64,000 nucleotides of DNA from Lepidodermella squamata (GCA_047495785.1 JBLDXI010000015.1:930001-994000); one strand, 5' to 3'. Shown: positions 29,310 through 64,000, counted from the first letter of the stretch. Program-made: numbers and translations. The notes: generated from the letters alone by a model not told the origin.

Positions 29310-30287
29310 ATGGTCCGCTTAAAAAATTGGCCGAGGTACTGGACTGTGATACTAATCATTGCAGGCACTTTAGCATGTGTTTACTTGGCAGTTTACAGTC
29401 CGACTATTCGAAACTCTAAGCCGAAGAAGCCCTTGCGAAATGTCATAGTCTACCTCACAACTCTCGGCCGCTATAGCCTCCTCTCGTCGTCATTGCAGTA
29501 CCTTTTCAAAAATTTCAATGCCAAGTACAAATATCCAGTCATCGTTTTCTACGACGGGCCACTGGGAATGGATATTTTCGATAGAGAGGTGAAAAATTGG
29601 ATAACGCCCGAATACCGAAAACTTATCTCCTTCGTCGAATTGGAATTTGAAATGCCGCCGAGATTTCGCAAAACTTATAACCCGGAAACGCTAGAACTCG
29701 GCAAACCCTTCCCGATCGGGTACCGGCATATGATCGACTTTTGGTTCCATCGAATTGTTCACGAACCTGTTATGCAAGACGTAGGGTACTACTTGCGCCT
29801 CGATTCGGATTCGCACATTAATTCAACGATTAATTACGACTTATTCAAGTTTATGGAGTCGAAGGAATATATGTACGGCTACCGCATCAAAAGCGTTGAT
29901 GGGAACTTCGTCACGGATGGTTTGATCGAATTGACTGAGGACTACGTATCTCGGCATGAAAGCACGGTCTGCCATGCCCAAATGCACGAATTCCCGTTGT
30001 TTAAAGAGGAGAGAAAATATGGGTTTCTACCGACGTACTACAACAATTTCGAAGTTCTGCACGTTCCAACTTTCCGTGACCATCCTGGTATTCGAAACTA
30101 TACGCGTGAAGTTGTGGAGTCTGAGAAGATTTACGAGAAGCGATGGGGTGATGCACCATTGAGATATATAACAGTTTCCATGTACCTTAACATTGCGACT
30201 CAGGTGCATAAATTCTGCGATATTAAATACGAGCATCAAGGGTGCAAGTATAATGCAACTTGCAAAAGCCCTGTCTTCGAACCCTGA
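29310..30287 (+). CDS. GT15 (Kre2/Mnt1/Ktr-like) alpha-1,2-mannosyltransferase homologue 1, type II membrane
   Basis: N-terminal TM; NFNAKYKYP, GYRHM..FW, YYLRLDSDS, YD.F..M...YGY, YNNFE, YEKRWGDAP. Confidence 0.88.
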   Translation: MVRLKNWPRYWTVILIIAGTLACVYLAVYSPTIRNSKPKKPLRNVIVYLTTLGRYSLLSSSLQYLFKNFNAKYKYPVIVFYDGPLGMDIFDREVKNWITPEYRKLISFVELEFEMPPRFRKTYNPETLELGKPFPIGYRHMIDFWFHRIVHEPVMQDVGYYLRLDSDSHINSTINYDLFKFMESKEYMYGYRIKSVDGNFVTDGLIELTEDYVSRHESTVCHAQMHEFPLFKEERKYGFLPTYYNNFEVLHVPTFRDHPGIRNYTREVVESEKIYEKRWGDAPLRYITVSMYLNIATQVHKFCDIKYEHQGCKYNATCKSPVFEP

Positions 30288-30872
30288 GATTAATCAAAGT
30301 GAATAAAGCTTCATTTACTTTTCTAATTACAATTCACCTTTTTATGCTATGATCCGGCCTAAATAAAAGGCAAAGTAATCGGTTGGCTTCGAGCTAGGCA
30401 GAACTACAACCTACAACCTACAGCCCCTGTTTTGGATTGCTATGGGGAAACTAGTAGTGCTGTTGTGGAGGGTGCAGGTGGGTATTTTCACCCCGAATTT
30501 ATCTCCAAATGGTCCCCTGGGGTTTTGTGGGCTTTAGTCAGGACCTCTTGAGGTGTGGGAACGGTACCCTCGAACCCTCACCCCTCCAGTACTGCGCACA
30601 CTGCTAAGATCAATCTGTTTTCTCTGAAGATGATGGATTTTATGCATCAGAAAACTGAAATCTTATTACGGGTATTTCGTTGACTTTTGCTACAAGGTTT
30701 CCTCCTCTTCGTTGTCAAGCTTATCCCTCAAAGCTATTGCCGGAGACCAGTGTGAATCATTTAAACTTTAGCCCCTTTCTCTTGTTTTTGGATCACATGG
30801 CTACCTGAACGAGCGATGGTGAAGAGCATTTTAGTTATTTTTTTATTGCAGTATCTGAAATCTACTTTAGGG

Positions 30873-31928
30873 TCAAGATCGAGTCTTATCAGTTCTAGTC
30901 ATCAAGCCACTCTGAGTTGTTGTAACTGGACTGCCGCAGGACTTGCCATACTTGCCCTGATGTTCGTAATCGAAATCGCAAAATTCGTGAACTTGCGCCG
31001 AAACGTTGAGATACATCGCCACCTGGAGATACCGCAACGGCGCATCGCCCCATCGTTTCTCGTAAATCTGATAAGAATCCACAACTTCACGTGTGAAACT
31101 TTGAATACCAGGATGATCACGGAAAGTCGGCACATGCATGACTTCGAAATTGTTGTAGTAAGTCGGAATGCCGTAATTGCGTCTCTCCTCTTTTGTCGGT
31201 GGAAATTTCGGGAGTTGTGAGGTGATCATTGATTTCTCATGCTGCGCTATGTATTTTTCGGCTAATTCAACCAAACCAGTTGTGACGAAGTACAAGTCGC
31301 TACTGCTCAGCCGGTAACCATACAACAATCTGTTCTCCTTCATATAGGTGAAAATGTCGTAATCTATCGGTGAGTGGATTAAAGAGTCCGAATCTAGTCT
31401 CAAATAGTACTCAACGTCTCGCATAACTGGTTGCTTCAACACTCCGTGGAACCAGAAATCGCACATATGTCGGTAGCCGATTGGCCACTGTTTGTTCGTC
31501 AAGGTTTCGGGATTGTAGATTTTGAGAAACTTCTCAGGAATTTCGAATTTTACTTCAACAAATTCGATAAGCTGCCTTTCCTGTAGCTGTATCAACGGTT
31601 TTGATAAATTGTCAAATTTTTGCAGTTCCAACTGCCCGTCGTAGAAAATGATTATTGGATATCGGTACTTCGAGTTGAAGTTTGAAAAGAGATGCCGTAG
31701 TGAGTTAACAAGTACATCGTAACGTTTAGCCGTTGCAAGGTAAAGGATTACGTTCCGTAATTTGATTGGGGGAGGCGGTTGAGTTGTAGAGGTGACAGGT
31801 TCGTTAAGCAGTATTTTGGAGCTGAACTGCAGTGAGGGTCCAAATGCGGCAAAGCAAATACAGCCAGCTATCGCTGATATCGCAAGGAGCCATTTCCTGT
31901 AAGCTGGCCAGCTTTTCATGAACACCAT
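30873..31928 (-). CDS. GT15 mannosyltransferase homologue 2
   Basis: GYRHMCDFW, YYLRLDSDS, YNNFEV, RWGDAP; N-terminal TM; convergent with copy 1. Confidence 0.88.
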   Translation of the reverse strand: MVFMKSWPAYRKWLLAISAIAGCICFAAFGPSLQFSSKILLNEPVTSTTQPPPPIKLRNVILYLATAKRYDVLVNSLRHLFSNFNSKYRYPIIIFYDGQLELQKFDNLSKPLIQLQERQLIEFVEVKFEIPEKFLKIYNPETLTNKQWPIGYRHMCDFWFHGVLKQPVMRDVEYYLRLDSDSLIHSPIDYDIFTYMKENRLLYGYRLSSSDLYFVTTGLVELAEKYIAQHEKSMITSQLPKFPPTKEERRNYGIPTYYNNFEVMHVPTFRDHPGIQSFTREVVDSYQIYEKRWGDAPLRYLQVAMYLNVSAQVHEFCDFDYEHQGKYGKSCGSPVTTTQSGLMTRTDKTRS

Positions 31929-32375
31929 TTTATCGAATCTTTAACGAATATATATTACTAACTCATTTCCTAAATAGATTGGAACGTACATTCTGAAGTT
32001 GATGTTCTGAAGGACAAAAAATCACCGCAGCTAGGTTATGTGTAGGTTATACCTAGTAAGATATTCTATGGGAAAACTTCCCAAAACATGCTTGGGTCGT
32101 GCAAAACTTAGGAGCCAATAGCTGCTTATAAATTCAACCAACAAACCACGACTTGCGTTTTGCGGTGGTATTCTCAGCAAAGCACTAAATTCTTTCCGTA
32201 TGCAATGAATATTAATCTCACCGCCTCATCGATTCGATTAAGGATGCTCGAGTTGCGGCATTTTCTCACCTTAAAATGCGCAATGTTTAGTAAAAATCTC
32301 GTACTGATGTTTCGTGCAAAAAGCCCGAACTAAAATGAATTTATGTTTACCCATTTTTTAAGGGTCCTCCTGTTA

Positions 32376-32488
32376 GCGGAACCAAATATGCTGTAGCGGA
32401 ACCAAATTTTGGAATGGAATTTTTGCATATTTCGACTTCGGTTCCGCAAAAAGCAAATTTGGTTCCGCTACAGCATATTTGGTTCCGC
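32376..32488. repeat. Perfect 34-bp inverted repeat made of GCGGAACCAAAT units (foldback/MITE remnant)
   Basis: GCGGAACCAAATATGCTGTAGCGGAACCAAATTT (32376-32409) and its complement (32455-32488); further GGTTCCGC units nearby. Confidence 0.8.
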
Positions 32489-32624
32489 AACATCAAATTG
32501 GGTTCCGCTAAAAAATATTCCGATTTTTTAACAAGAAAACACAATAACGGAAATTATTATTTTCACAATATCACACAATATCACAATAAAGACGGGAGAT
32601 CTGGCATTCTGGCATATTACGTTG

Positions 32625-34001
32625 CTACAAGAAGTGATGGATCGTGGAAATTAGAGTCAATAATTGAGCCAAAGAAATCGATTCACGATAAGCAGAGGAT
32701 GCATTCAATTCATAGGCTCGCAAAACAGCATCTCCGCCAGGCAGCCCGATCATTGTGAACAGTCGATTTCCGTACAAGGCAGATCGATAACCCTGAATAT
32801 TACTCCCACGCAGCCAAAACTCACCATTAGCCTTATTCATCGCAGTAATGACGACGCAAGCTTCGGAAATTACGTAATCATTGGTCACAATAACTCGGCT
32901 GGTTGCGATGCCTCGAATGTAGAGATTAGTCGTGGTTTGCTGGCAAGAATAGCTTGTCTTGATTATTTGGCCATCACTCCAGCGAAGGGCCACGATAGCA
33001 CTGCGGAATCGGTCAAGCATGAAGATCATCTGACCATCTGTCGCCAACGAATCAGCATCCCTTTGATCTGAAATCACCCCGTTTGACCGCCAAATCTGCC
33101 TCTGAGCGTTTACATCAATGCCGTGAAGATTGACATCGTAGAAGTAAGCATTTTCCAAGCGTGTTAGACTTGTGGCAATCAGGAAATTATTAGCGGCCAC
33201 TGGAACCCAGCGAAGGGATGTCCGGCCAATTTCGGAGTCATCTTGAAACTTGAGTGACCATAGAATCATGCCGGTTTTCATGTCCAACTCAGATATACAA
33301 TAAGGCCGAGAGACAAACAGCCTTCTGTCTTGATAAATTGTTGCTGCGAAAATATATTCATCATCAATTTTTGTTGAGAAGATCAATTTGAGTTCTGGCA
33401 AAGAGAAAGCGGCTAAATTACCAGGTTTACCAGGGTGGGCCGTGTAAACTGTTTTCTGAGACTGACTTATCGCACTGATGAAATCGTGGGCAAACGCTAA
33501 TTGGTGCGAAAACCTAGCCGTATTAATCTGTTCCATAGTTTCGAAGTTGAAAGTCAGCAGTGACGTATCCATCAAGTTTTCGCCCAATTTGATGTCGAGC
33601 CTCATGAATAAGTAGGATTTTGCGTCGATTGTTGTCACAACAGGTTGGGATACGAATGTCCAGTTATCCCTTAGGCTCAGGTTTGCTGGCAACTGCCTAA
33701 CCAGGCGGTTTTTCAGCTGGCCTGTGGCTACGTCAAACATGTAGTACTGGGCGAAGTTATCGTGAACGAAAACTGTATCGTTATGGATTAGGATGTGCGT
33801 GAAACTTGTTTGAACTAGGCCAGTTAACAGGGCTTCCCAACCTAGCTTTGTCCCGCTCAGGTCACTGCTCATTGTTACATTTTTGAAGCCAGTATGATCA
33901 GGCCCGCCTCCAACATCGCTCCATGAATCGTCGTATGATATCTGGCTGAGGCATTTGGTAAAAGTTACCATGACCAGTGCAACTCGAAATGCTGCCATCA
34001 T
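32625..34001 (-). CDS. Secreted or GPI-anchored PQQ/BamB-like beta-propeller protein 2, intronless, 458 aa
   Basis: Signal peptide then SWSDVGGGPDHTGF; blades FDVATG, ELDMKTGMILW, GIDVNAQRQIW, AMNKANGEFW; hydrophobic C-terminus. Confidence 0.75.
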   Translation of the reverse strand: MMAAFRVALVMVTFTKCLSQISYDDSWSDVGGGPDHTGFKNVTMSSDLSGTKLGWEALLTGLVQTSFTHILIHNDTVFVHDNFAQYYMFDVATGQLKNRLVRQLPANLSLRDNWTFVSQPVVTTIDAKSYLFMRLDIKLGENLMDTSLLTFNFETMEQINTARFSHQLAFAHDFISAISQSQKTVYTAHPGKPGNLAAFSLPELKLIFSTKIDDEYIFAATIYQDRRLFVSRPYCISELDMKTGMILWSLKFQDDSEIGRTSLRWVPVAANNFLIATSLTRLENAYFYDVNLHGIDVNAQRQIWRSNGVISDQRDADSLATDGQMIFMLDRFRSAIVALRWSDGQIIKTSYSCQQTTTNLYIRGIATSRVIVTNDYVISEACVVITAMNKANGEFWLRGSNIQGYRSALYGNRLFTMIGLPGGDAVLRAYELNASSAYRESISLAQLLTLISTIHHFL

Positions 34002-35961: not shown

Positions 35962-38581
35962 ATGAGCAAAATAGTTTTTATACTCGTATTGATCACTTGT
36001 TCATGTGGTCGCACTGATGGCTCCTGGCTTCGATGTGTAGCCGTCGCAATTGACGACTCTGTCGAATGTCGCGAAAACGCTTGTCAACCCGGTGGTTGGG
36101 TTCAATTCCCAGCAAACGTTACATTCAGCACGCAGGCGGCTTGCTTGAATGCAAAGAAGCAATTCTCTATCTTCAAAATGCCAGATTCAACTTCATGGTT
36201 TGACGCTGCCCAGAAATGCAAACAGGAATCAGGTCAACTTGCGACGATCAAGAATTTCGCTGAGCTTGAAATCGGTCGAACGCTGATGACAACATTGAAC
36301 GTTACAAAGGCTTGGGTCGGTATCTATGACAACCAGATTGCGTCTTTCCAATGGCTCGACAACGTCATGGTTTGACGCTGCCCAGAAATGCAAACAGGAA
36401 TCAGGTCAACTTGCGACGATCAAGAATTTCGCTGAGCTTGAAATCGGTCGAACGCTGATGACAACATTGAACGTTACAAAGGCTTGGGTCGGTATCTATG
36501 ACAACCAGATTGCGTCTTTCCAATGGCTCGACAACGTTACTATCATGGACTTCGATATGGGGCCCGAGGGAGCCCGACGACCAAGGACCTTGCGGCCTGG
36601 TTTCGCCCTACGCAGAACTCGGCGCATTTCCAAGCAATGTGCGGCTTAACGACAAGGGGTGCACCACGTTATATTCTTCGGCCATTTGCGAGTTGTTTGA
36701 CAGTGGCGTAAAACGGTTCACCTTACTCCAAACTAATAAAAGCATCAATTGGAACGAAGCAGCGTCACTGTGCGATAAAGCATCCGCCAAGCTTGCGACC
36801 ATAAAAGGTTCAACCGAACTTCAAATCGTTCAAACTTTGATGCAAAATAACAGTGTGACTACGGGGTGGGTCGGTGCTGTGGCTAAAAAGGTGCCAGTAG
36901 TCTTCACCTGGATGGACGGAGTGAGCTTGTCAAACAGTGATCCTATTTGGGGACCCAATCAACCCTCCGGCGATGGATTCTGTGCCACGCTTATATCTTA
37001 TGGCTCACTTGGCACCTACCCGAGCAGTCTTAGGTTCAATGACGATTTTTGTTACGCATTGGGCGATGGAGCGATTTGTGAGTCGGTTGTCGCTTCTACC
37101 AAGACATTCACCGCGATCAAACCCGGGCGAACGATCACGTGGCCAGAGGCCGATCAGCTGTGCAAAAATGCTTCAGCCAAGCTGGTGACGATAAAAAATC
37201 CGAGCGAGTTTCAACAAGTTCGACAGTTGATGGGTAATTACAGCCTGCAGAAGGCGTGGACTGGTGCCAAGCGAAATCCGCAGACGCATTTCAAATGGAT
37301 AGACGGAGTTCCGCAGCCGAGCATTGACCCTCTTTGGGGCCCAACCGATCCGAGTAACGACGGAGCGTGCGGCACGCTGCTGTCCTTTCCTCAGGTCGGA
37401 TCCTACCCTAACAACATCTTCTTGAACGACCAGTTTTGTTATTATCTGCGGGGCAGTGGTGCGATATGTGAGACGTTCATCTCACAACCAAGCTCCGCAG
37501 ATAACTCGACATCCCCACAATCAAACTCTACAGCTTCCTTGACAACCCCGCAACCAAACTCCACGAATTCCTCGATTACCCCGCTGCCAAATTCTACAAA
37601 TTCCTCGACAACTGAGCTGCCATCTGACGTAAGTCACCACTGTTCACTGTAAATAATTTTGCAATAGCTGTAGCTGCATTCGTTTTAATTAATATATTAA
37701 ATAATATATATTTAATAAATATATATTTAATTAATGTGCAATAATTTATCAAAGAACCGGAGTTCGATTCCACAAAGCTTCATTGTTCTTTTGCGACATG
37801 GGTGTCATCCAATTAAAAATGTTTATGCAAAAAATGGGCGTTGTCATGGGTCAGAATTCCGATCAGACATCAATTTCAGGCTTCAAACTGCTATATTTGT
37901 TTCTCAATGTAGGATGTGAACTTCAAGAGATGCGTGAGCCAGTCAACCTTGCAATTCATGGGTTGCCGAACAAAATGTCTACCGGGTGAGTTTGTTCTTA
38001 GCACGAAATCGACTGAGAAGGCATGCGTGCGTGGGGTAAGTTGTGAAGTTGGGGTCATTGAGTATTGAGTATGTCACAAATTGCAATCCTTCAGGCCGCC
38101 ATAAGGTGCTATGACAAAACTACGAAACAGACTAGGTGCATATCAGATGGAAAGACGTGCAATGAGAATGAACGTCAGGTGATGATCGAAGCAAAGTTCC
38201 TAATTATCTTTGAAGTTATACTTATACACAGGCCGACGGCAAATTCAATACCTACACTTACTTCAGTCGTAATTACATGCTTTGCATGAACGATCCAGCC
38301 GAGGTAAATACTTGATATTTTCCGTATTCGACGGGATTTTACTCTCAACATTGCCTTGTTTTTTACTAGGATCACATCCGCTGCGCCAAGTCTGGTACTA
38401 GTCTGGTCGAATGCCGCCCCATTTCGCTTGGCTGCAATGCCGGAGAGGTTAGCCCCGAATTCATAACTTTGAAACTACGCTAGAATCTATTTGCTTTTTT
38501 CAGGTCAAGTTTGGCTCGCCTTATTCAAGTATCGACCAATGCTATGCTAATTTGGAGAGCTCCTTGAATGTTCCACAATGA
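35962..38581 (+). pseudogene. Multi-domain C-type lectin A (signal peptide, 4-Cys module, 3 CTLDs, S/T linker, three 4-Cys modules); frameshifted
   Basis: CTLD motifs W..A...C....LATIK, AWVG, WGP.EP/QP, LND..C, AICE. A 172-bp tandem duplication and a second +1 shift near 36537-36557. Five small downstream exons end in NVPQ* at 38581. Confidence 0.75.
36193..36536 (+). repeat. Exact tandem duplication, 2 x 172 bp
   Basis: 36193-36364 equals 36365-36536. Confidence 0.95.
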
Positions 38582-39434
38582 ATTGGCGAAAAGCGTCACA
38601 CTATTGCATTTTTCACTTTTCACTCAGTGATCAGTGATGGAAAGTAAATTATCATTTCACTTGAATTTTCTTTGATGACTTTTTGTGTCTGTGACTTTTC
38701 TGCTCACTATTCGGAAAGCTTCAGTTTTGGAGGCTCATTAATTCGTAGCTTTGACAAAGTTGATGTACATAATATGTACATATTATGAAACTAACTAATG
38801 TCTCAAATAAATTATTTTGGCCCTGAATAAAGAAAAGGATGAATTACTCTGAAAAATCGGTGTCTTTTCTTAATCATTCCTGGTCTTCAAAGCAATCGCG
38901 TATAGTCGAAACTATTCTATGAAGTTGACGTCTCTTTATATCAGTTAAAATTCTGAGCAGAAATTGTCTCGCTGAGTCGAATAGAGATGTGGCGCAATTG
39001 CACCTAAGGCTTCACACCACAAGTTTTCGATACTGGGAGGAATACTGTTCATCTCACTTTATTGCTTGCTGGCAGGTGTCTTGCAACAGTTTTCTGAAAA
39101 AGCAGCAGCATTGCTCTTTAAACTACGACATATGCATATATTTTCATTATCTAATCTGACACTCCACTTTTGTCACATGTTGTTTTTGGCCCTTAAATAT
39201 GAACACAAATCATTAAATCAAGATAAATAAAAAGATTAAATAGAATTGCAAGTTGACGACCGGGGAATGAATCAAAATATCAAAATATCAAAATAACCTG
39301 CACATGTGAAGTTGAGTGTGAAGACGGCACAGGTTAGCTCCGGCCTCATGAATTGGCACGTGCAGCACGAGCGAGAAGTTTGAAACTTAATTTTTCAACG
39401 GTACACATTTGCTGGCTGATTCTCTATTATTACT

Positions 39435-41652
39435 ATGATTCACAATTGTGTTCATTCATTTTAATCGCGGCCTCTCTTGGTTGCGTTGATAGCTCCTGGG
39501 TACGCAGCGTGGCTGTTGAGAAAGACGGCTCGGTCGAATGTCGTGAGAACGCCTGCTCACCTGATGGTTGGGTCCCATTTCCACCAGGGCCATACACCTT
39601 CGGAACTCAAGCCGGATGTTTGAATGCGGAAAAGCGGTTCACAGCTTTCAAACCGGAATCAACACTGAGCTGGAACGAAGCCGATGCTGCGTGCGGCAAT
39701 ATGTCAGCCCAACTGGCAACAATCAAAACTAAAGCCGAGCTTAGTGTTGCTCAAGCCTTGATGAGCAATTACTCATTGGACGTAGCTTGGGTCGGCGCTA
39801 AGGATAAATCGGCGGCGCTTTTTGGTTGGATCGGCGACGTCTTCTTTCCAGACTCGCCTTGGGGCCCCGGTGAACCGCTTTTCGGCAACTATGCTGCGGT
39901 CACTCGCTTTGACGCTTTGGTGGAACCCTACCCAGTCAATCTCCTGCTCAGCAGTCAGGCATGCGAAACTGGGGATGGTGAGTTTGGCGCAATATGTCAA
40001 CCAATCAATGGCGAATTTACTGTCGCCGATAAAACAATCAATTGATGAAAGATGCGGCGCAAATGTGTGGTTCAGCGTTCAACGGTCAACTTGCGATAGT
40101 CAAAAATGCGACCGACCTACAGGCTATTCGTGTGCTCATGGCCAACAGCAGTTTGAACAAAGCATGGGTCGGCGCAAAGCGTAAACCTAAAAAAGTTTTC
40201 GTAGGCGTTGACGGTGTGTCGCCTTTCCAATTATCGACAATTATTGGGCGCCAGGTGAACCGAGTGGTGACGGAGATTGCGCCGACGTTACGTTTGGACC
40301 ACAATACGCGCTGATTCTCAGAGACAAGCCGTGCTCGAGTTCGGTTGATGGCGCGATTTGCCAGAAATATGTTAACGCTTCGAAGGTCTTAACATCCATA
40401 AAACCTCCACAGCCTGGGCAGTATTTCACTTGGGACGAAGCTGCCACGGCGTGCGCAAATGCGTCGGCTCAGTTGGCGACAATTGTAAATTCAGCAGAAA
40501 TCGAAACAGTCCGCATCCTGGTCCAGGGATCCGCTCTGGGAAGTGCTTGGGTTGGCGCCAGGCGGAAAGAAATGGCCTATTTCAGTTGGATTGATGGCGA
40601 TCAATTCAGCCAGTCGATTTGGGGCCCTAACCAGCCGGATTACGCTGGGTTTTGCGGTGTCTTGACGACATTTGACGCAAGCAATTCTAGCAGCACATTG
40701 CTCAACGATGCGTTGTGTGAAGAATTGGTGGATGCTTCCGCTGCGAGACTTTCGTTGATAATCCTCCACCATCAACCGTAAGTATTCACATTTTTTGGTA
40801 GCCATGCGTTAAAATGTTGTGACTAAACTTATCAGTATTTTTTCGATACAAGCCTGATTTTAATTCCTAGAAGTCTGAAATTTTATTTCCCATGTAAAGG
40901 GCTACTATCGTTGCGGCAAGAAGTCAACTTTGCAGTTCGTTGATTGCCGAACTTCCTGTCTACCGGACGAGATTGTCCTTGGCACGGCGAAGAATAAAAA
41001 GTCCTGTTCGCAAGATGTTCGTTCTAATGTTAGAAAAATATCGAATTGTATCATTTTGTTTTAATATCTTTCAGGCTGCTGTTCGATGCTATGATGCTAA
41101 AACCGGAACTACCAGATGCGTATCTGACGGCACGTCGTGTAATGCGAACGAAGAGGTGAGAGGCACTAGAAGCTGGTGATAATTCCCATATTTCCCTTCG
41201 TATATTTAGGCCAAAGGACAATTCAGTTCTTACAAGTACTTCGGTCGCAACTACGTAGCCTGCATGAACTACCCCGCCCAGGTAATTAGGAGAAGTTTTA
41301 AATATTTTTAAAACGCTATACGCTAGGATTTTCCTGAAGGATTTGATGAACCAGGATTTGTTGAAGATGATCATTACATTGAGCATTGAAGAAGTTGGCC
41401 GAGTATTATTAGTTGATTGCCGGTTGTTTGTTTTTACAGGATCACGGCCGATGCGTAAAGAAAGGAACTACTCAGGTTGTCGACTGTAGGAAAAAGTCAC
41501 TGGGCTGCTATGACGGCGAGGTTTGTTCCATCTTCGAATAAAAGGATAGCGTGTCAATAATTTTTTGTTCACAGGTAATGGTCGAGCCGTTCTATAAAGA
41601 TGTCGACAAGTGCTACGCAAATTTGGAAGGACCGCTGAACATTCCGAAATGA
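39435..41652 (+). pseudogene. Multi-domain C-type lectin B; several frameshifts
   Basis: Same architecture as A. ATG 39435 is out of frame with the signal peptide; further lesions near 40043, 40215 and 40735. Terminal exon VMVEPFYKDVDKCYANLEGPLNIPK*. Confidence 0.75.
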
Positions 41653-41980
41653 GTCATGCAGTTATCCTTGTCTGAAAACAATGAAAACAATTGTGTGTCC
41701 AATTCCAAATTGCTAAATGTGGCGCTCTGTTCGCTATTTTCATTAATCTATTATAAAAAGCTAAAACATGAACTTTAACGTGAGAAGGTTTCGATAATTT
41801 TGAATCGCGAAAAATAATTAATTAATTAATTAACTCGAACAATAAAATATAGTTTTGCGGCACGCGTTTGCTCCGATTTAATTAATTAAGCTGTGCTACA
41901 CAGGAAATCGTGTTTTCACGTGAATCCTCGGCTTTAAAAGGCCGTTTGCTGAATTGTAAAATTTCATTAATTATTTCTTC

Positions 41981-44312
41981 ATGAGTTATCAATCTGTTTT
42001 ATTCCTGATTACGGCGATTTGCGGATTGGCCGATGCCTCTTGGGTGCGTTGCGTTCATGTTGAAACGGATGGCTCTGTCGAATGCCGCCAGAAAACTTGT
42101 CAACCTAGCGGTTGGGTTCAATTTCCAGCAAACTCCACCTTCATCACGAAGCAAGGCTGCTTAAATGCGACGAAAAAGCTGACTGCCATCAAAACTTCAA
42201 TTAAAAATTTCAACGCGGCCATTTTGAAGTGTAACGAGGCTGGGGGTTAACTAGCATCGATCAAAGATACTACCGAGCTCAAGTCAGTGCAAACCTTGAT
42301 GAAGAGCAGCGATTTGAAAACAGCTTGGGTCGGCGCTAGCAAACCCCAGCCGAAGTTCCTATGGACAGATGGTTCGAAGCTGTCGAACGACGATCTAGTC
42401 TGGGGCCCTCCAGAACCCAGCGGCGACGGAGATTGCGGCGAGATCAGGGAGTATAATGGGATAGGTTTCTACCCAGACAATCTGCGCCTGAATGATCAAT
42501 CTTGCTATAGCAGTGCTTCTGCTGCCATTTGCGAAGCGTTCATTGGTTCAACCAAGCAGTTCAGTGCTATCGTAAAAAGTCTACACTCTTTCTATGCGGC
42601 AAGCCAAGAGTGTCAACTTTTGTCAGCCCGGCTTGCGACGATCAAAAATGCGACCAAACTCAAATCTGTTCAAGACCTGATGAACAGCAAGAGTCTGAGA
42701 ACGGCGTGGATCGGTGCCAGCACTCAAAAACCAGAACAGACTTTTACTTGGTCAGACGGGTCGCAGCTGTCGAGCGAAGATCTAGTTTGGGGCCCTTCAG
42801 AACCTAGCGGCGACGGAGATTGCAGCGAAATCAAGGAATACTATGAGCTAGGTTCCTATCCAGATAATCTGCGGCTAAATGATCAATCCTGTTCTACCGG
42901 GGCTGATGGTGTCATATGCGAGACTTTTAATGCTTCGTCAAAGCAGTTTAGCGCTATCCTGAAAAGCATCAACTCTTTCAACGCAGCCAGCCGCGAGTGC
43001 CAACTTTTGTCAGCCCGACTTGCGACGATCAAAAATGCGACCGAGCTAAAATCTGTTCAAGACCTGATGAAAAACAACTGAGAACGGCTTGGATCGGTGC
43101 CAGTAAGCCACAGATACCGTTCCGATGGATAGACGGTGCACAGCTGTTACTCGACGATCTTGTTTGGGGCCCTCATGAGCCCAGCGGCGATGGATCTTGC
43201 AGCGACATCAAGGAGTACTCTGGGCTTGGTTCCTACCCAGATAATCTGCGCCTCAATGATCAATCTTGTTCAGCCGATGGTGCTGATGGTGTCATATGCG
43301 AGACGTTTGTTAACTCATCGGCAACACAACCTCTGGTTAGCTCATTCATTTCCACTATTAAGCGCAAAGATATAAATTGCAGAGTAATGTCGCATCATCG
43401 ATTTGTTGTCAAATAATTGTGAAGATTTTGTAAAGATTATCAACAAATCAGATACTTACACTTGCTTTTAATAGTTCGAAAACAGCTCATAATTCAATCG
43501 TTTCATTTTTAGGGCTACTACCGATGCGTGAAGCAAATCGACCCGCAGTTTGCTGTTTGTCGAACAACCTGTCAACGAGATGAGTTTGCAATTGGTGCAG
43601 CGTTTTCGAGTAATAAAACCTGTTCACACGGGGTGAGTTGTATGAAATATTTCACGAAAAAACGACAAATCAATTTCTTTTGTTCAGGTCGCGATTCGGT
43701 GCTATGATTTAGCTGCAAATAAGACCAGGTGCATATCGGGTAGAATGTCGTGCAAAGCGAGCGAAGTTCAGGTTTGAATTGTTCAATGTTAAATCTGCAA
43801 TTCTGGATCCTGGATGTTATCAATTTTTCACGTTGTTACACAGTTTCAAACAAAATTCAACAAATACAGCTTTTTCTCTCGCAATTACGCCTCGTGCATG
43901 AACTACAGCCCCGTTGAGGTAAATATTTAACTAGATTACATTTCTTTAGAAGAAATTTTTACAATTCTGTAATTTACCGCCATTAGCAATAAAACTTTGG
44001 AAGGCTCACTTACTTCAAAATTGCGATAATTAATCGTTTCCATGCTTTTATTTCTGCTGATTTTTCTAGTTACTAATTCGATTTGTGTTATATCAGGCTC
44101 ATATCAGATGTGTCAAGTCGCTGGGGCCTAAACGCTGGGTTGGTTGTCGAAAACTTTCGCATGGCTGCAACGCTGGAGAGGTTTCCTCAAATTTCAAAAT
44201 ATTCCGCTCATACTAATTTTCATGTATATAATAGGTTATGGTCGGTCCTGTCTACAATACCTTGTTCCAGTGCTACGCCGATTTGACACAACCGTGGACT
44301 ATTCCGAAGTGA
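41981..44312 (+). pseudogene. Multi-domain C-type lectin C; premature stop and frameshift
   Basis: TAA at 42248-42250 where paralogues have Q (G-Q-LA); frameshift near 43075-43081; three similar CTLDs with EPS/LND. Terminal exon VMVGPVYNTLFQCYADLTQPWTIPK*. Confidence 0.75.
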
Positions 44313-46197: not shown

Positions 46198-47140
46198 GCC
46201 TATGCTGTAGCCAGAAATAAGCAGTGTAATTGTGGAGTTTTGATGTGCTACTACACTCTGTTGCTGCAGTCGTAATGTATGTCTCATCAATGTATTGTCA
46301 TAGTTATAGCTTTGTTTTTGTTAAGGCGGAGATTTTATGTTGCGCGCATGCGGTTTAATTACAGTGCGCGCTGAGGCATTGTGCGCGATAAAGTTTTGAC
46401 CTAGAAAATAATAGCATTCTAGATCTATCTTAACCAAGTGAATAACAGTAATGCGGCCGAGTGACATGGCTATTCTGAGAGGAGCTGAAAAATTCACTTG
46501 ATAATGTTACAAATATATATTATTTTTTCTTACAATTTAATATTTATTTTCTGTAGAATATGTAAGAAATTTCTAAAATTAATTATCTATATGACTAAGG
46601 CCTAAAACTGAAAATTACGATGAAAAAATAAATAAATCATGAAATCACCTGCTGAAGGCTTGAAAGCGCATTTTTGATTTTTGGACGAATTTAAAATTGG
46701 CTCCGATTCAACTCCCGCTGCCGGCCTAATTAGTTCCGGCCAATAAATATCGAGCCTCTCATTATTGGTGATGATGCGCACAATAAATATTTATCTGTTA
46801 TGATTCAACGAAAAAATGTCAAATTGATTCAGCGCACAAAATCGCCTTCTATGATGATGAATTGAACGAAAATGCGATTGAACGAACATAGTTTTTTGTT
46901 GATCCAAGCTTGGGAATAGAAAATGGCCACTCTACGGATGTTTTGATAAACTGTTTTAAATTTTCGTTTGTCTCAATCATATTCTGTGTAATTAATTTCG
47001 TGATAAATTTGAAATTATTTTCTTTCAAAATGTCCAACATTTTCGTTGAAAATACCCGGAATAAGCCTTCTAACACATTGTTGCAACGCTTTATTTGAGA
47101 AATTCGCGAAAATAAATTATAAATAATATTAACTATTTAT

Positions 47141-49199: not shown

Positions 49200-49203
49200 T
49201 ACT

Positions 49204-49239
<36 letters not shown>

Positions 49240-50907
49240 CAGTAGTTTAGTGCTGTCCCCTTTCGGGGCGGACTGCCTCCTCGCATATCTGCCTCCACAA
49301 GTCCCGGTCCCTGGCCGAGGCCTGCGCCGAACCCCAGATCAGCCCCATGTCGCGCAGGTCGCTTTCAATTGGGGCCCGCCAAGTAGATTTTTGGCCGCCC
49401 AATCGCTCGTTTGCCCTGTGGCGTCCACCAAAGGGCAACTCGGGGAGTGCGCCTGGCATCCATCCGTAGCACATGCCCTAGCCAGCGGAGTCTGATGTCA
49501 GCCGATATTGGCCGGCATTTGCAAATGCGGTGAGCTCCTCATTTGAAACGATCTTCGGCCAGAAAATGCCTTGAATTCGTCGGAGCAACGGTTGTGGAAA
49601 GAATCCAGCTTTTTCACGTAAGTCCCCAACTCTCGCCAGCACTCTGAACCGTAAAGTAAGACTGCCTTGAGCGTGCAGTTGTAGACGCGCATCTTGGTCG
49701 CCTTGCTGAGCTGTTTCGATTGTCAGACCGCCTTTAGCGTGCCTAGCTTTCTTGAGTCGGGAGGCGATATCCGCGTAGGCTCCGTCAAGGCTGATGACAC
49801 TGCCAAGGTACGGAAACGCCTCCACGTCCTCTAACACCTGATCTTGGATGATGATCTGCCTCTTGTCGCAGGTGGCGATGCCCATGACCTTAGTCTTGGC
49901 GATGTTGATCTCAAGTCCGATCGTGGCCGCGGTTTCGCGTAGCCTCGTCGTCTTCGCCTGCAGATGTTCAACGCAGGTCTCCAGCAGAGCTAAATCGTCG
50001 GCGAAGTCAAGGTCGTGAAGCTGCGTGAGCAACATCCACCTAATCCCATCATTTTGCCGCTCAGTGACAGCGCGCATCACGAAATCAATCGCAACGCAGA
50101 ATATAATCGGTGAAAGAATGCAGCCTTGCCTGACGCCTGACACCAGAGTTTACCGCAAAGCTCTCACTCTCAAATCCAGCCTCCATCAGCACACGACACT
50201 CGAAGCCGGTGTAGAACATGGCGATGAGTCGGACAATTTTATCCGGGACGCCGTAGTGACGGAGGATCTTCCACAAGGTTTTGCGGTGTACGCTGTCGAA
50301 AGCCTTCTTGAAGTCGACGAAATTAATAAGCTGGAGTGTTCCACAGGAGACATTGCTCGACGATATTTCGCAGGGCAAAGATTTGGTCGATGCACCCACG
50401 AAGCGAGCAAAAACCAGCCTGCTCTTCTCGCAACAGCCTATCAATCTGGTCCCTTATGCGGCACAAGATGACCCGACAAAACACCTTGCTGGGAATTGAA
50501 AGGAGGTTGATGCCTCGCCAGTTGTCGCAGTTGGCGAGATCCCCCTTTTTGGGATTTTGAGAAATCCCAACTCTTGACACCAGTTTTGCATCCGGTACCC
50601 TGGCCGTCGTCGCTCGACCGTCCTTGCGGCTTTGAGTCGAACGAGTCAAATAGCGCGCAGAATTTCTGGCGCCCGGGGTTACCGGCGGCGAGTTACAATT
50701 TTGTTTGTTATTTGTTGAGGTTTCGAGAACGGGTGTGTTTTTTATGTGGCGGTTGGGCAAGCACACAACCTCTAACCCTGAGGACTGGGTCGCTGATGTT
50801 AGTTTGCCTCTATACGTCGGCCTCTCCGCATTGGTTGAACCATCGGCACAGCCCTTCGGGTCGTCGAGACGAAGCCCCCAAACCACGGCAAGGTATCAGC
50901 AATGGGG
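49200..50907 (-). mobile_element. RTE-clade LINE, internally deleted and frameshifted, with 5' UTR, (CTA)n tail and 13-bp TSD
   Basis: Motifs PKKGDL..C.NWRGI.LL, EEQAGF, FVDFKKAFDSVHR, GVRQGCILSP and DLDFADD spread over several frames; (TAG)n at 49205-49246; TTAGAATAATATG at 49187-49199 and 50908-50920. Confidence 0.9.
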
Positions 50908-57321: not shown

Positions 57322-57412
57322 CAGACGGACGGACAGACGGACAGACGGACAGACGGACGGACAGGCAATTTTGACTGTATAGTACCGGGTTTCACCCGGC
57401 ATTCACCCGGCA
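57322..57412 (+). repeat. (GACG/GACA)n tetranucleotide array with a short 3' hairpin; DINE/Helentron-like remnant
   Basis: CAGACGGACGGACAGACGGACAGACGGACAGACGGACGGACAG followed by CCGGGTTTCACCCGG. Confidence 0.55.
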
Positions 57413-58156: not shown

Positions 58157-59284
58157 TCAATTTTTCTCATCGGGGATCACAGGACTTGGACACGTGATAG
58201 GGAATAATTGGCCGTGGTAGTACTGGATATCGCAAAATTCATGAACCTCAGTTGCGTTATCAAAACACATCTGAACCGTGAGATACCGCAGCGGCGCATC
58301 GCCCCATCGCCTCTCGTAAATCTTCTTCGAAGCTACAACCTCAAGGGAGAAATCTCGGATGCCAGGGTGTTCGCGGAAGGTCGGTACGTGGAGGATTTCA
58401 AAATTGTTATAATAAATCGGCAGTGAAAAGTTGTCGCGATTCTCCTTCGGAAATGCCGGCAGTTGATGCGTGAAAATCGAATCTCGCCTTTTCGATACGT
58501 AGTCATCCGTGAAGTTGACCAGGCCAACCGTGACATAGGCCGGGTCGTGCATTTGATTTTTGAACCCATACAGATACCCGCTCGATTTCATGAATTCAAA
58601 CACGTCGTAGTTGATTTTCGATCGAATATTCGAATCTGAGTCGAATCGCCACATGTACTCAACGTCTTGCATGACTGGCTCGAAAAAGACCTTGGTGAAC
58701 CAGAATTCGATCATGTTGAGGTACCCTAAGCCCCAACGTTCCCAAATCGTGCAATTTGGAGGTTTATAACCGAACTTAACCTCGACAAAATCGATCAATT
58801 TGTCTTCATCCGTTGTCATCCACATATTTGTTAAACTGAAAAATTGCTCCTTTTCAACAGGCCCGTCGTAGAAAATGATGATAGGATATCGATATTTCCG
58901 GTTGAAATTTTCGAAGAACTGACGTAACGATTCACTGGTTTGCGCGTATCGATTTGATTGTGTCAAATAGGCGATTATATTCCTCAATTTTCGCTTTGAT
59001 TTGACTGGTAGTTTGCTTTTGTTAGGTTGTTTCGGGCTAACGATTAGAGGTTGTTTACGGCCTGTATAGGGCCTGGTTAGACGAAGCTCGCTTGTAGTTT
59101 TGCTGTAACTGCTTCCAAACGATGTTGGTTTGGCGACGACTTCACGCGAATTTCGGACCGATCTCGCAGGCTCGTTTTTGGCCCTTGTCAGGCTCAAGTA
59201 GACGAATAGTGAGCCGATCAACACCAGATAGACGAAAATTAGACATCTTAATGAAATTCGAACTTGTCTCAACCTAAAAGACAT
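58157..59284 (-). CDS. GT15 mannosyltransferase homologue 5, long stem region
   Basis: TM, GYLNMIEFW, YMWRFDSDS, YNNFEI, YERRWGDAP; splice acceptor with CTAAC branch site ending 2 nt before the ATG. Confidence 0.88.
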   Translation of the reverse strand: MSFRLRQVRISLRCLIFVYLVLIGSLFVYLSLTRAKNEPARSVRNSREVVAKPTSFGSSYSKTTSELRLTRPYTGRKQPLIVSPKQPNKSKLPVKSKRKLRNIIAYLTQSNRYAQTSESLRQFFENFNRKYRYPIIIFYDGPVEKEQFFSLTNMWMTTDEDKLIDFVEVKFGYKPPNCTIWERWGLGYLNMIEFWFTKVFFEPVMQDVEYMWRFDSDSNIRSKINYDVFEFMKSSGYLYGFKNQMHDPAYVTVGLVNFTDDYVSKRRDSIFTHQLPAFPKENRDNFSLPIYYNNFEILHVPTFREHPGIRDFSLEVVASKKIYERRWGDAPLRYLTVQMCFDNATEVHEFCDIQYYHGQLFPITCPSPVIPDEKN

Positions 59285-61455: not shown

Positions 61456-62652
61456 ATGACAAGTCTCAATCGCATGAGGCGGGCCTCGCTATGCATTTTC
61501 ATCGCGTCACTAGCTGAAATCTATTTGCAATTCGCATGGCCTACAATACCCGGCGGGAAATTGTACCGCGATTTTGAGATCAAGTACAGCGTAACTGATC
61601 GTGCGATGAATGCGGATGGCGAAATTACGATTATGATGGCAACTTCACGGTACAAGGAAGATTTAACTCAACCACCGCATTACGACCCTGCCACAGATAA
61701 CTGTCCGAAAAAGTGTCGAATTGTATATCACGCCACGTCCCCACACGAATTGCTAACAGCTGATGCGATGATTTTCCATCTTGTTCATACAGATTTGAAC
61801 ACGACATGGTTTGAATGGCTGCTACGCCACCGCAGTCGAGAACAAGTCTTCATATTCTACTCGGTGGAGCCTCCATTAATATTGGCTCGAATGCTGCCTG
61901 GTATGAGGGATTATCGCTATTTTAACGGACTTTTTAACTGGACAATGACATATCGCAGAGATTCAGACATACCCACCTACTACAACGGCGTGATTGGCTA
62001 CGAGAGAATCCCGCCTAAAACGCCGCAGCCTTGGACGAAAATCTCAGGAAAAAAGCATATTGCTGCGGCTATATCGAATTGCATGAGTCAGAATTACAAT
62101 AGAATAGGAATTCTTGAAGAGTTGCGAGGTCTCGGACTTGAAGTCGATATTTTTGGTAAATGTGGCTCAAAGACATGCACTGGTGTATTCCGTCCAGAAT
62201 GTTATCACCGTTTCGAGAGTGGCTACCTGTTTTACGCCGCCTTCGAAAATTCCCTTTGCCAAGATTATGTCACGGAAAAGGCGTTCAACATCCTGGACTA
62301 CAACATTGTCCCCATCGTTATAGGCGAGTCGAATTATTCCGCGATTTTGCCTCCGAAATCGTTTATTAACCTGCGAGACTTTAAATCTGCTCAAAGTTTT
62401 GCTAGGTTCATTCTCCAACTTTCGCAGGATGAAGTGGCTTACAATTCGTATTTTGATTGGAAAGCCAACTATCGGTTGAAGAAGGAGCCATATAATAATA
62501 TGTATTGCAAACCATGTCTGAAAATGCATGAGCACAGATCTATGAAACCGAGAGAAACAAAAATATATGAAGATCTAGATTCTTGGTGGCGGCTGCCTTG
62601 CTCGGGCACAGCCCGAGTGTACCGCGGAAGGTTCTTACTGCTCATCATTTAG
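61456..62652 (+). CDS. Alpha-1,3-fucosyltransferase (GT10), intronless, 398 aa
   Basis: FNWTMTYRRDSDI and the alpha-1,3-FucT motif YLFYAAFENSLCQDYVTEK; VPIV.G; LPPKSFI; N-terminal TM. Confidence 0.92.
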   Translation: MTSLNRMRRASLCIFIASLAEIYLQFAWPTIPGGKLYRDFEIKYSVTDRAMNADGEITIMMATSRYKEDLTQPPHYDPATDNCPKKCRIVYHATSPHELLTADAMIFHLVHTDLNTTWFEWLLRHRSREQVFIFYSVEPPLILARMLPGMRDYRYFNGLFNWTMTYRRDSDIPTYYNGVIGYERIPPKTPQPWTKISGKKHIAAAISNCMSQNYNRIGILEELRGLGLEVDIFGKCGSKTCTGVFRPECYHRFESGYLFYAAFENSLCQDYVTEKAFNILDYNIVPIVIGESNYSAILPPKSFINLRDFKSAQSFARFILQLSQDEVAYNSYFDWKANYRLKKEPYNNMYCKPCLKMHEHRSMKPRETKIYEDLDSWWRLPCSGTARVYRGRFLLLII

Positions 62653-62974
62653 ATTTGATGTTCTATTTCGTTCGTTTTCAGTACTGAAAGCAATCATTGA
62701 ATCATCAAGCAAGCGATGGCTAGGAAACAATCGATAAATCTCAATGGGTAATAATTTTACATCATGTTTTATGGAAAATATAGTTATCATTTAGGTTATT
62801 GAATACTGTCAGCCTGTTATGACATTTCGGAATGTACGCCGATTTTATACACTAAGGGATGCATACAGGAATTAAACAGATTCCAATAAATCAAACATAC
62901 TTCATTTCGTTTTTCGGTGTACCTTGGAACCTTTCGGCGTCATGGTTATACGTGTGCAGCTGTTGGGGCGCGAG

Positions 62975-63555
62975 TCCGAATTCTGCCCGTACGCATTCGG
63001 GCGGGCCCGTGTGCAGACGGGTAACATTGATTCGCCGCTCCGCACTCGGGCCGCTTAAGAACATGCCCATATGGGAGGTTTACCGTAAATTTAACAAATT
63101 CAATAGATTCACGCTTCACGGTACATGGGCCGGCCTATGCGTTGACCCGAGCACGGCGGAGAGCAATGGGAACCAGCGCAATTGTTAGGCGCTCGAGACG
63201 TACTCGGGGCGCCGGGTTTGTGCTGGGACTTCTTACAGTTATCGTGTAGGGCGTTGGTTGTAGGATGACCCAAGCCCGGCAGCCCAAGCCCGGAGGCCCG
63301 ATTCCAGAGGCTCGAGCCCGGCTGCCCTAATGCGTCACCTAACAATTGCGCTGCTTCCCATTGCTCTCCGCCGTGCTCGGGTCAACGCATAGGCCGGCCC
63401 GTGTACCTTGAAGCGTTATTCTTTCGAAATCGTTAAATTTACGGTAAACTGCGCATATGGGCCCGGCATAGACTGACCAGCGCGCGGAGTGGCGAAGTGC
63501 AGTTACCCGGTCGCATACGGGCCGGCCCGAACGCGTACGGGCCGATTCCGATGAG
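62975..63555. repeat. Long GC-rich inverted repeat: arms ~62975-63189 and ~63339-63555, ~150-bp spacer
   Basis: Arms align without gaps; the inner ~60 bp are nearly identical and the outer parts are diverged. Confidence 0.85.
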
Positions 63556-63857
63556 CACATGAGGAGACCATTAAGCAGAATATTGACCTTTTTAACGAAG
63601 CGAGAAATTAAAAAAAAATTTGAGGGCATGTATAATTCGTATTATTTGGATACGTCCAATTTATGATACGCTCTGCAAGAGATTTGCAAGAGGCGGACTC
63701 AACTTTTCTAATCGATTTCATAAAATCCGTTGTTCTTTTCAAACATTATTTATTCGTTCCAAATCATAACATGTTATTATTACCCACTGGAAGCGTTCAA
63801 ATCATGAATAAATGGCGAGAAATATAACTGAACTTTAGACCGACCGGAGAATTTCCA

Positions 63858-64000
63858 TTATTTCTCATCGATGATCACTGGACTTGGGCAAGTGATAGGA
63901 AAAGGCTGGCCGTGGTAGTACTGGATATCGCAAAATTCATGAACCTGCGTCGCATTGTCAAAATACATCTGAACCGTGAGATACCGCAGCGGCGCATCGC
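63858..64000 (-). CDS. GT15 mannosyltransferase homologue 6, 3' end only (runs off the window)
   Basis: Minus strand reads DAPLRYLTVQMYFDNATQVHEFCDIQYYHGQPFPITCPSPVIIDEK*, very close to copy 5. Confidence 0.88.
   Translation of the reverse strand, partial: DAPLRYLTVQMYFDNATQVHEFCDIQYYHGQPFPITCPSPVIIDEK

Follow-up and report, generated by a model that had tools for sequence, protein, structure and literature searches.

The locus described here raises the question of how an animal came to carry a whole series of genes for glycosyltransferase family 15 (GT15), and of what their products may do there. The window, i.e. the whole stretch of 64,000 nucleotides of Lepidodermella squamata DNA that was analysed, contains six such genes (g1 to g6). 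Our reading as a whole, to which we give a probability of about 0.6, is that they belong to a tandemly expanded, host-integrated GT15 family with a D-x-D metal motif, that they encode Golgi type II enzymes, that the family already had several copies when the host and a relative diverged, and that an old acquisition is the favoured origin.

GT15 genes and their neighbours in the window

In line with the initial annotation, five complete, uninterrupted ORFs and a partial sixth were recovered as GT15 paralogues, the five at 67–88 bits (67.5–87.9) against the profile PF01793 (Glyco_transf_15; cut-off 25 bits, profile length 325) and the sixth by tblastn. The matches of g1 to g5 cover profile positions of about 42–324, the best stretch of g5 being 155–323. 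The intronless g1 (29307..30287, plus strand; ATG at 29310, 325 aa, 76.5 bits) carries RLDSDS as its metal motif and a predicted type II signal anchor, with an N-terminal hydrophobic 19-mer of KD 2.12. Divergent to it lies g2 (30873..31928, minus strand; 351 aa, 87.9 bits), also intronless and with RLDSDS, which was the copy chosen for the structure model and as search query. The intronless genes g3 (45097..46290, minus strand; 396–397 aa, 67.5 bits, RMDTDS) and g4 (47141..48241, minus strand; 366 aa, 75.2 bits, RMDSDS) stand in tandem, followed by the intronless g5 (58157..59284, minus strand; 375 aa, 71 bits, RFDSDS). Only the 3' end of g6 falls into the window (63861..63998, minus strand, the feature extending to 64000), i.e. 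the C-terminal 46 residues, which are 91 % identical to the C-terminus of g5 by tblastn; the gene is complete past the window end (G000:C15:993912-994736), its reading frame of 357 aa being fully open in L018. The ends of g5 and g6 also coincide with a direct repeat of 87 % (58152–58302 and 63850–64000). Pairwise identity among g1 to g5 is 40–54 %. Their metal motifs are exactly those quoted in the initial annotation, and the conserved Tyr, N[FI]E and RWGDAP are kept as well, in the form of GY..M (GYHHV in g3), NFE (NIE in g3) and RWGDAP.

The GT15 copies had also been described as interleaved with animal-type genes and transposons, and we found the same. A C-type lectin ORF array on the plus strand (36498..43081; ORFs 36498–37652, 39353–40045 and 42287–43081 with 85.5, 28.4 and 94.2 bits to PF00059) lies between two GT15 pairs and, judging by its domain matches, represents animal-type neighbours. 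Broken reverse-transcriptase ORFs between g4 and g5 (49478..50886, minus strand; translation read by eye) mark a retroelement remnant. Adjoining g2 is a PQQ_2/BamB-like beta-propeller gene in a single ORF (32625..34001, minus strand; PF13360, 31.5 bits), whose nearest Atlas clusters are bacterial but weak, at only 0.82–0.84. Finally, an intronless GT10 fucosyltransferase gene with an ORF of 398 aa (61456..62652, plus strand; 163.7 bits to PF00852, 62.5 bits to PF17039) sits within the GT15 array, with g5 on one side and g6 on the other, although it is itself not a GT15 gene.

Copy number and integration in the host genome

The genome contains 23 matches to PF01793, 20 of which score 62–110 bits in open frames of 330–499 aa with zero stops. 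This amounts to at least 21 GT15 copies on seven contigs, at least 20 of them intact, nine being packed into one 43-kb array (C15:959–1,002 kb) that extends beyond the window end. The host is an animal, as the initial annotation had assumed, since Wnt genes at four or more loci and more than 150 nuclear-receptor DNA-binding domains are present in the same genome. The abundance of the latter speaks against a ctenophore, and the lack of GH6 and cellulose synthase against a tunicate. The assembly also yielded neither a mitochondrial COX1 nor the N domain of nematode cuticle collagens, and a rotifer spliced-leader sequence had no match, the last being a weak test.

Considering that GT15 is unusual for an animal and that the nearest named relatives are protists, the genes could in principle derive from a contaminating protist or fungus, or from an assembly artefact. 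However, C-type lectin, GT10 and retroelement sequences alternate with the six genes on a contig of 5.2 Mb, GT15 copies occur on seven contigs altogether, and a retroelement of the host interrupts one of them. Moreover, the depth of the DNA run is about 80–110 over genes and spacers alike, with alleles at around half depth at heterozygous sites within g1, GC3 is host-like (0.42–0.63 for GT15 versus 0.43–0.55 for neighbouring host genes), and a metagenome contig of a relative carries a GT15 gene among housekeeping genes. Contamination is therefore contradicted by linkage, depth, heterozygosity and GC3, and we rejected it as having hardly any probability left; the GT15 genes are integrated in the host genome. 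Their lack of introns is weak evidence for transfer, because the Beclin, GT10 and PQQ-like genes of the host are single ORFs too.

Regarding expression, contigs of X2, which is presumed to be an RNA run (its RNA status being the tool's guess), cover the body of g2 at a depth of 20–31 and its flanks at 0, and cover g1 weakly. Thus, g2 is probably transcribed.

Predicted fold, active site and topology

The AlphaFold model of g2 (pLDDT 90.6) has a transmembrane helix at residues 7–29 and a low-confidence stem at 30–57. Its best 11 PDB matches are all GT15 structures, i.e. CmsA/Ktr4, Kre2p and Ktr4p (E 5e-21 to 2e-19, TM 0.63–0.70), with the next-best fold, which is GT8-like, far behind (E 1.8e-8, TM 0.39). 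In the HMMER alignment to Kre2p (1S4N), D179-S-D181 of g2 falls on E247-P-D249, and Y152, R177, D179, D211, N260, D295 and H323 correspond to Y220, R245, E247, E279, N327, D361 and H388 of Kre2p; the two differences (D179 versus E247 and D211 versus E279) are both conservative changes from Glu to Asp. The roles of the catalytic and donor-sugar residues are taken from work on Kre2p and CaMnt1 (PMC11077754, PMC12493134).

Of the 21 own copies, 20 retain the Tyr, N-x-E and RWGDAP motifs. With regard to the metal motif, 19 copies have D-x-D, C15_2538k shows D-S-E instead, and C15_1478k (C15:1478790) has lost it together with the Tyr and RWGDAP motifs. The column of the C-terminal His is filled in 19 copies, while the copy on C74 ends short of it. 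All 21 have a single N-terminal hydrophobic 19-mer (KD 1.5–3.2) and no other in the protein, preceded by basic residues (Lys/Arg) in all but one. These features point to a type II signal-anchor topology, and a Golgi location is predicted.

Phylogeny and origin of the family

Among 198 compared rows, i.e. the 21 own copies and the retrieved relatives with their extra domains, the metal motif is D-x-D in 189 and E-P-D in one, and the alignment to Kre2p reaches 63 bits versus 205 bits for Euglena. By motif and alignment, the animal copies belong to a D-x-D subfamily of GT15 and not to the fungal Kre2/Ktr/Mnn6 (E-P-D) type. Other members are found in Euglena gracilis and E. longa, Naegleria fowleri, the green alga Myrmecia bisecta, Rhizomucor pusillus (Mucorales) and Chromosphaera perkinsii, an ichthyosporean and thus a unicellular relative of animals, with best identities to the animal copies of 38–44 %. 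The named relatives amount to eight proteins from six genera (three cluster look-ups), none of them from an animal, and most other relatives in the databases are metagenome proteins. Since D-x-D marks a non-Kre2 subfamily, a fungal donor of the yeast type finds no support, which agrees with the earlier suggestion that the donor was perhaps not fungal. A viral donor was likewise considered and rejected, because the clade nearest to each of the 57 IMG/VR loci is a separate one of short proteins (P0018/P0012), and in no case that of the animal copies.

In the careful tree (IQ-TREE, LG+C20 PMSF), the own copies form a clade with the metagenome proteins P0028 and P0033 (100/98). The latter two fall inside a 19-row subset of this clade (95/85), and 12 copies make up an own-only clade (100/99). 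The position of g3 outside this 12-gene clade indicates that its sub-lineage is older than that of g1, g2, g4, g5 and g6, and g3 is also the own copy closest to P0028 (44 %). The contig of P0172, a cluster mate of P0028, encodes a Beclin 69 % identical to that of the host, compared with 36–39 % for the best named animals (molluscs and arthropods); one of the two metagenome GT15 proteins thus belongs to an organism demonstrably related to the host. In JGI metagenomes, a search for further host kin yielded only two short fragments nearest to the own copies (L140 and L149). Because P0028 and P0033 nest within the animal clade, the GT15 family predates the split between the host and this relative. 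The family would hence have been multi-copy before the split from the metagenome-known relative, with later local duplications in the lineage of the host.

Even between tandem pairs, dS is 0.7 or more (0.73 for g5 versus g6, with a dN/dS of 0.16). For the five pairs with unsaturated dS, dN/dS is 0.15–0.21, as would be expected of paralogues diverging under purifying selection. Of the initial proposal of an acquired gene that was then amplified and is now diverging, the amplification (at least 21 copies, 12 of them in an own-only clade) and the divergence are therefore borne out, while the transfer is plausible only, the deep nodes being weakly supported.

In the ML tree, the animal clade is sister to a clade containing Euglena and metagenome proteins, with a support of only 81/83, and an AU test does not reject the grouping of the animal clade with Chromosphaera (delta lnL 9.5, p-AU 0.34). 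The latter would fit with vertical inheritance, i.e. the presence of a D-x-D GT15 in the ancestor of Holozoa or of eukaryotes, which was kept here and lost in most animals, so that only the expansion is lineage-specific. The occurrence of the subfamily in eukaryotes as distant as Euglena, Naegleria, Myrmecia, Rhizomucor and Chromosphaera also speaks for such descent, as do the five GT15 genes in each of the cryptomonads (PMC6260743), the single GT15 listed in a snail CAZyme table (PMC10295696), and the age of the genes, which are fully ameliorated and show the high dS mentioned above. However, this scenario calls for numerous separate losses, and a survey of plants, animals and fungi encountered PF01793 in fungi alone (PMC5225481). 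In addition, the named relatives include no animal, and the neighbour of the animal clade in the ML tree is the Euglena-containing clade and not Chromosphaera. We consider vertical inheritance a possibility to be taken seriously, albeit not the probable one, and lean slightly towards an ancient acquisition from a protist-like source as the more parsimonious reading.

Proposed function

The predicted layout is that of a Golgi type II enzyme, in which a short tail on the cytoplasmic side is followed by a single signal-anchor helix, a disordered stem and the GT-A catalytic domain. In g2, D179 and D181 together with His323 would hold Mn2+ and the diphosphate of the nucleotide sugar, Arg177, Asn260 and Asp295-Ala296 would hold the donor sugar, and Tyr152 and Asp211 would position the acceptor. 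A sugar, most likely mannose from GDP-Man, would then be moved with retention of configuration to glycans of secreted or surface glycoproteins. It is the conservation of residues that suggests such a GDP-Man-dependent, retaining mannosyl transfer.

Nevertheless, the proteins may share the GT15 fold and still not be alpha-1,2-mannosyltransferases, acting instead with another donor or linkage, transferring mannose-phosphate like Mnn6, or serving in many copies as non-catalytic glycan-binding proteins. Identity to the characterised fungal enzymes is only 19–21 % by structure and around 25 % by sequence, the metal motif differs, and GT15 itself includes the mannosylphosphate transferase Mnn6 (PMC5225481). 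Furthermore, g2 has no pair matching the guanine-contact Arg-Asn of the fungal enzymes at the aligned position (HMMER alignment extended by hand and read by eye), so that its nucleotide sugar could differ from GDP-Man, and the copy at C15:1478790 has lost the Tyr, D-x-D and RWGDAP motifs. Against this, the residues that contact mannose and position the acceptor in Kre2p and CaMnt1 are all kept in 20 of the 21 copies, and the paralogues are under purifying selection. We regard a function other than alpha-1,2-mannosyl transfer as rather unlikely, and mannosyl transfer remains our preferred prediction. In our literature search, we found no paper characterising a D-x-D-type GT15, biochemically or otherwise, and no description of GT15 in rotifers or of a GT15 expansion in any animal.

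It is tempting to speculate that some twenty protist-type GT15 enzymes build alpha-mannose-rich, mannan-like glycans at the surface or in secretions, and that the clustering of GT15, fucosyltransferase and C-type lectin genes reflects a co-evolving system to 'write and read' glycans for self-recognition, mucus or defence. We think this improbable; if true, it would mean a mannan-like glycan class not known from animals. Regardless, GT15 is regarded as a Golgi family of fungi, and a conserved and probably expressed animal family of about 20 genes implies that this lineage probably makes glycans that other animals do not. The case also brings to light a large GT15 subfamily with D-x-D, whose members occur in protists, in some fungi, in bacteria or phages, and in this animal. 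With its many paralogues, a datable array and a relative for comparison, it lends itself to studying the expansion of a glycosyltransferase family within an animal and, as a second question, the possible recruitment of foreign-type glycan synthesis for mucus, cuticle or egg coats. Practical benefits are modest for now, the activity being predicted only.

Comparison with known systems

The best-known counterparts are the yeast Kre2p/Mnt1p and Ktr4p and the Aspergillus CmsA/Ktr4 (1S4N, 5A07 and 7BOO), which share the Pfam family, the GT-A fold and the type II layout with the animal copies. Equivalents of their Tyr220, Arg245, Glu279 (here Asp), Asn327, Asp361 and His388 are present. In contrast, identity is only about 20–25 %, E-P-D stands against D-x-D, the guanine-contact Arg/Asn pair seems to be absent, and the hosts are fungi versus an animal.

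Closer are the D-x-D GT15 proteins of protists and early fungi, which are 31–40 % identical to the own copies, have Y-Y-x-R-L-D-[ST]-D-S and RWGDAP in common with them, and are of the same length and layout. These relatives have at most two copies per named relative among the matches listed, compared with 21 in the animal, and the animal copies form their separate, highly supported clade. GT15-like proteins of viruses (IMG/VR) and of phage-rich Atlas clusters have the same D-x-D motif and fold and are only 26–33 % identical to the animal copies.

Foreign-type carbohydrate-active enzyme genes are also known from other small invertebrates, such as the horizontally acquired gene sets of bdelloid rotifers and the cellulose synthase of tunicates. 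While GH6 and cellulose synthase, as in the tunicate case, were not found in this host genome, the GT15 genes resemble these examples in that a carbohydrate-active family atypical of animals is likewise integrated, probably expressed and amplified in one lineage, whereas a transfer is only plausible here.

GT15 genes and their neighbours in the window

In a Pfam search of the window, five uninterrupted reading frames of 326–397 codons matched the Glyco_transf_15 family (PF01793) at 67–88 bits (curated cut-off, 25 bits), i.e. g1 (29307–30287, forward strand) and, on the reverse strand, g2 (30873–31928), g3 (45097–46290), g4 (47141–48241) and g5 (58157–59284), with pairwise identities of 40–54 %. 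A tblastn search with these five genes revealed a sixth, g6 (63861–63998, reverse strand), of which only the last 46 codons, 91 % identical to g5, lie within the window. The initial annotation, which listed six GT15 paralogues with uninterrupted frames, the last of them partial, was therefore correct.

Between g5 and g6, and thus inside the GT15 array, an intronless 398-codon ORF (61456–62652, forward strand) encodes a GT10 fucosyltransferase, not a GT15 enzyme, and falls within the 5,698 bp spacing of the g5-to-g6 duplication. The sequence separating the GT15 pairs also contains broken reverse-transcriptase ORFs and three C-type lectin ORFs (36498–37652, 39353–40045 and 42287–43081, all forward strand). 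When the translations were read by eye, the lectin domains showed the tripeptides EPD, QPS, DPS or EPS followed by an ND motif; classical C-type lectins carry EPN/QPD and WND. A single ORF of 458 codons with a hydrophobic N-terminus (32625–34001, reverse strand) encodes a PQQ_2/BamB-like beta-propeller, possibly another foreign-type gene; its closest Atlas clusters are bacterial, at just 0.82–0.84.

A short part of the spacer between g2 and the PQQ-like gene (32243–32636) is a very high-copy repeat, with a DNA-contig depth of 4,380–7,810 vs around 90 nearby and many loose ends and joints. Just upstream of g6 lies an inverted repeat (62977–63189 and 63338–63550) with arms of 213 nt that are 81 % complementary, stand 148 nt apart and both bear a similar short ORF, probably a transposon remnant. 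Upstream of the GT15 genes we found an intact-looking reverse-transcriptase ORF (13870–15297, reverse strand; RVT_1, 116 bits), two long ORFs at 22670–28228 (forward strand) with weak concanavalin-A-like/Laminin_G_3 matches, and several further long ORFs without a Pfam match.

The GT15 family in the host genome

The window corresponds to C15:930001–994000 of a 121-Mb assembly (151 contigs). A six-frame PF01793 search of this assembly returned 23 matches, 20 of them in open frames of 330–499 codons without internal stop; with overlaps removed, the 23 matches amount to 21 distinct copies on seven contigs. On the 5.2 Mb contig of the array, g6 is complete just beyond the window end and is followed by three more copies (C15:995463, 996863 and 1001460), one array holding nine GT15 genes and one GT10 gene in around 43 kb. 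The amplification proposed from the window thus proved larger than the six genes noticed there, with some 20 intact genes. One copy on contig C54 is split into two pieces around 9 kb apart. Another paralogue (L023, C15:1478790–1479251) is degenerate: its 326-codon frame is open, but it no longer has the Tyr, the D-x-D or RWGDAP. With a score of 29.7 bits and a very long branch, it is a pseudo-enzyme or else a gene in decay.

In five copy pairs with unsaturated dS, dN/dS was 0.15–0.21 (Nei–Gojobori), and dS reached 0.73 even for the tandem pair g5/g6, which argues that the duplicates are old and constrained. The copies on contigs C29 and C46 are 94 % identical (dS 0.125). Nuclear-receptor matches, too, often occur as equal-score pairs across contigs (C25/C26, C28/C33, C15/C105 and C26/C49), and the assembly apparently includes diverged duplicates or haplotypes as separate contigs.

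The array behaves as part of the host genome. Contigs of the DNA run cover genes and spacers alike at a depth of around 80–110, and second alleles in the interior of g1 occur at about half depth, as predicted for a diploid nuclear locus. GC3 is 0.42–0.63 in the GT15 genes and 0.43–0.55 in neighbouring host genes, and overall GC content is also similar. Contigs of a 2015 run, whose type the tool guessed to be RNA, cover the body of g2 at a depth of 20–31 and both spacers at zero, a pattern unlike that of a DNA run; g2 is therefore probably transcribed. Since the host genes for Beclin, GT10 and the PQQ-like protein are also single ORFs, the absence of introns is uninformative on the origin of the GT15 genes.

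That the host is an animal, as had been presumed, and not a ctenophore is borne out by Wnt genes at no fewer than four loci and by nuclear-receptor DNA-binding domains (PF00105), with at least 150 scored matches among 438 candidates genome-wide. This PF00105 expansion is very large, with dozens of matches in one dense array (C54:2.55–2.67 Mb). Nematode cuticle-collagen N domains, GH6 and cellulose synthase were not found in the host genome, and neither was a rotifer spliced leader, although the latter search is a weak test. Host Beclin is only 36–39 % identical to that of the best named animals (molluscs and arthropods), pointing to a fast-evolving and poorly sampled lineage.

Relatives and origin

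When 1.84 billion cluster representatives were scanned in full with HMMER, 1976 relatives emerged, all at 42 % identity or less. Among 198 aligned rows (the 21 host copies and the relatives retrieved, with the extra domains of the latter), the metal site reads D-x-D in 189 and E-P-D in one, and yeast Kre2p scores 63 bits vs 205 bits for a Euglena protein. This assigns the host genes to a large D-x-D subfamily rather than to the yeast Kre2/Ktr type, and the earlier suggestion of a donor that was perhaps not a fungus stands in so far as the genes are not Kre2-like, the transfer itself being hypothetical. A literature search found no characterisation of this subfamily. The few named relatives are Euglena gracilis, E. 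longa, Naegleria fowleri, N. lovaniensis, the green alga Myrmecia bisecta, the mucoralean fungus Rhizomucor pusillus and the ichthyosporean Chromosphaera perkinsii, with no animal among them; diatoms make up most of the Atlas cluster that is closest by features, and cryptomonads reportedly have five GT15 each (PMC6260743). Homologues of the D-x-D type also occur on viral contigs in IMG/VR (57 loci, L032–L088; contigs of up to 171 kb; 26–33 % identity), all 57 lying closest to another clade, made up of short proteins. Viral members (Uroviricota) account for 67 % of one ESM-Atlas PF01793 cluster; together with the 57 contigs, this shows that phages or their hosts carry GT15 as well.

For the phylogeny (IQ-TREE, LG+C20 PMSF, 81 rows, 318 columns), we removed cluster mates that were almost identical, together with the degenerate copy. 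The 20 remaining host copies form one clade with the metagenome proteins P0028 and P0033 (support 100/98). The sister group of this animal clade contains Euglena and many anonymous metagenome proteins (support just 81/83). A tree constrained to unite the animal clade with Chromosphaera, as vertical descent within Holozoa predicts, is worse by 9.5 log-likelihood units and is not rejected by the AU test (p-AU 0.34). The tree is therefore compatible both with an old protist-to-animal transfer and with retention in the host lineage accompanied by many losses elsewhere. Retention would fit the very wide spread of the D-x-D subfamily across eukaryotes, its presence in an ichthyosporean and the single GT15 in a snail CAZyme table (PMC10295696); however, a survey of plants, animals and fungi reported PF01793 in fungi only (PMC5225481), which, with no animal among the named relatives, favours transfer. 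On this evidence we put an old transfer from a protist at roughly 55 %, regard vertical descent as a serious but distinctly less probable explanation, and leave a small remainder to other scenarios.

Within the animal clade, P0028 and P0033 fall inside a 19-row subset (95/85), while 12 host copies, including g1, g2, g4, g5 and g6, form a host-only clade (100/99). A 54 kb metagenome contig bearing P0172, a cluster mate of P0028, carries ordinary eukaryotic housekeeping genes whose ORF pieces are separated by gaps of 40–80 bp, resembling tiny introns. Its Beclin is 69 % identical to that of the host, far above any named animal, which identifies the contig as that of a host relative. GT15 was thus already multicopy when the host and this relative separated, and most of the expansion occurred later.

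Predicted fold and comparison with fungal enzymes

The AlphaFold model of g2 (51 homologues, mean pLDDT 90.6) comprises an N-terminal helix (residues 7–29) and a compact domain (58–335), with a stem of low confidence between them. In Foldseek, its best eleven PDB chains were all GT15 (CmsA/Ktr4, Kre2p and Ktr4p; E around 1e-20, TM 0.63–0.70), far ahead of the next fold, the GT8-like XXYLT1/UGGT. All 21 copies have a single hydrophobic segment, at the N-terminus, preceded by basic residues in 20, a predicted type II signal-anchor layout as in Golgi transferases.

At the sequence level, g2 aligned with yeast Kre2p/Mnt1p (1S4N) at E = 2e-16 and with two Ktr4 structures. In the Kre2p alignment, g2 Y152 corresponds to Tyr220, R177 to Arg245, D179 and D181 to Glu247 and Asp249, D211 to the acceptor-binding Glu279, N260 to Asn327, D295-A296 to Asp361-Ala362 and H323 to His388, the second metal ligand; catalytic and contact roles follow the CaMnt1 and Kre2p literature (PMC11077754, PMC12493134). 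The motif readings of the initial annotation were exact. Of the 21 copies, 20 keep the Tyr, N-x-E and RWGDAP motifs whole. Nineteen carry D-x-D at the metal site, C15_2538k has D-S-E there and C15_1478k has lost this motif. The copy on C74 stops short of the C-terminal His.

When the alignment was extended by hand, g2 had no pair matching the guanine-contacting Arg-Asn of the fungal enzymes, whereas their mannose-contacting residues are retained. GDP-Man is thus, as far as residues can tell, the most likely donor, and the synthesis of mannan-like glycans by the host with these enzymes is a hypothesis. The host GT15 set adds a new member, from an animal, to an enzyme family that is already known.
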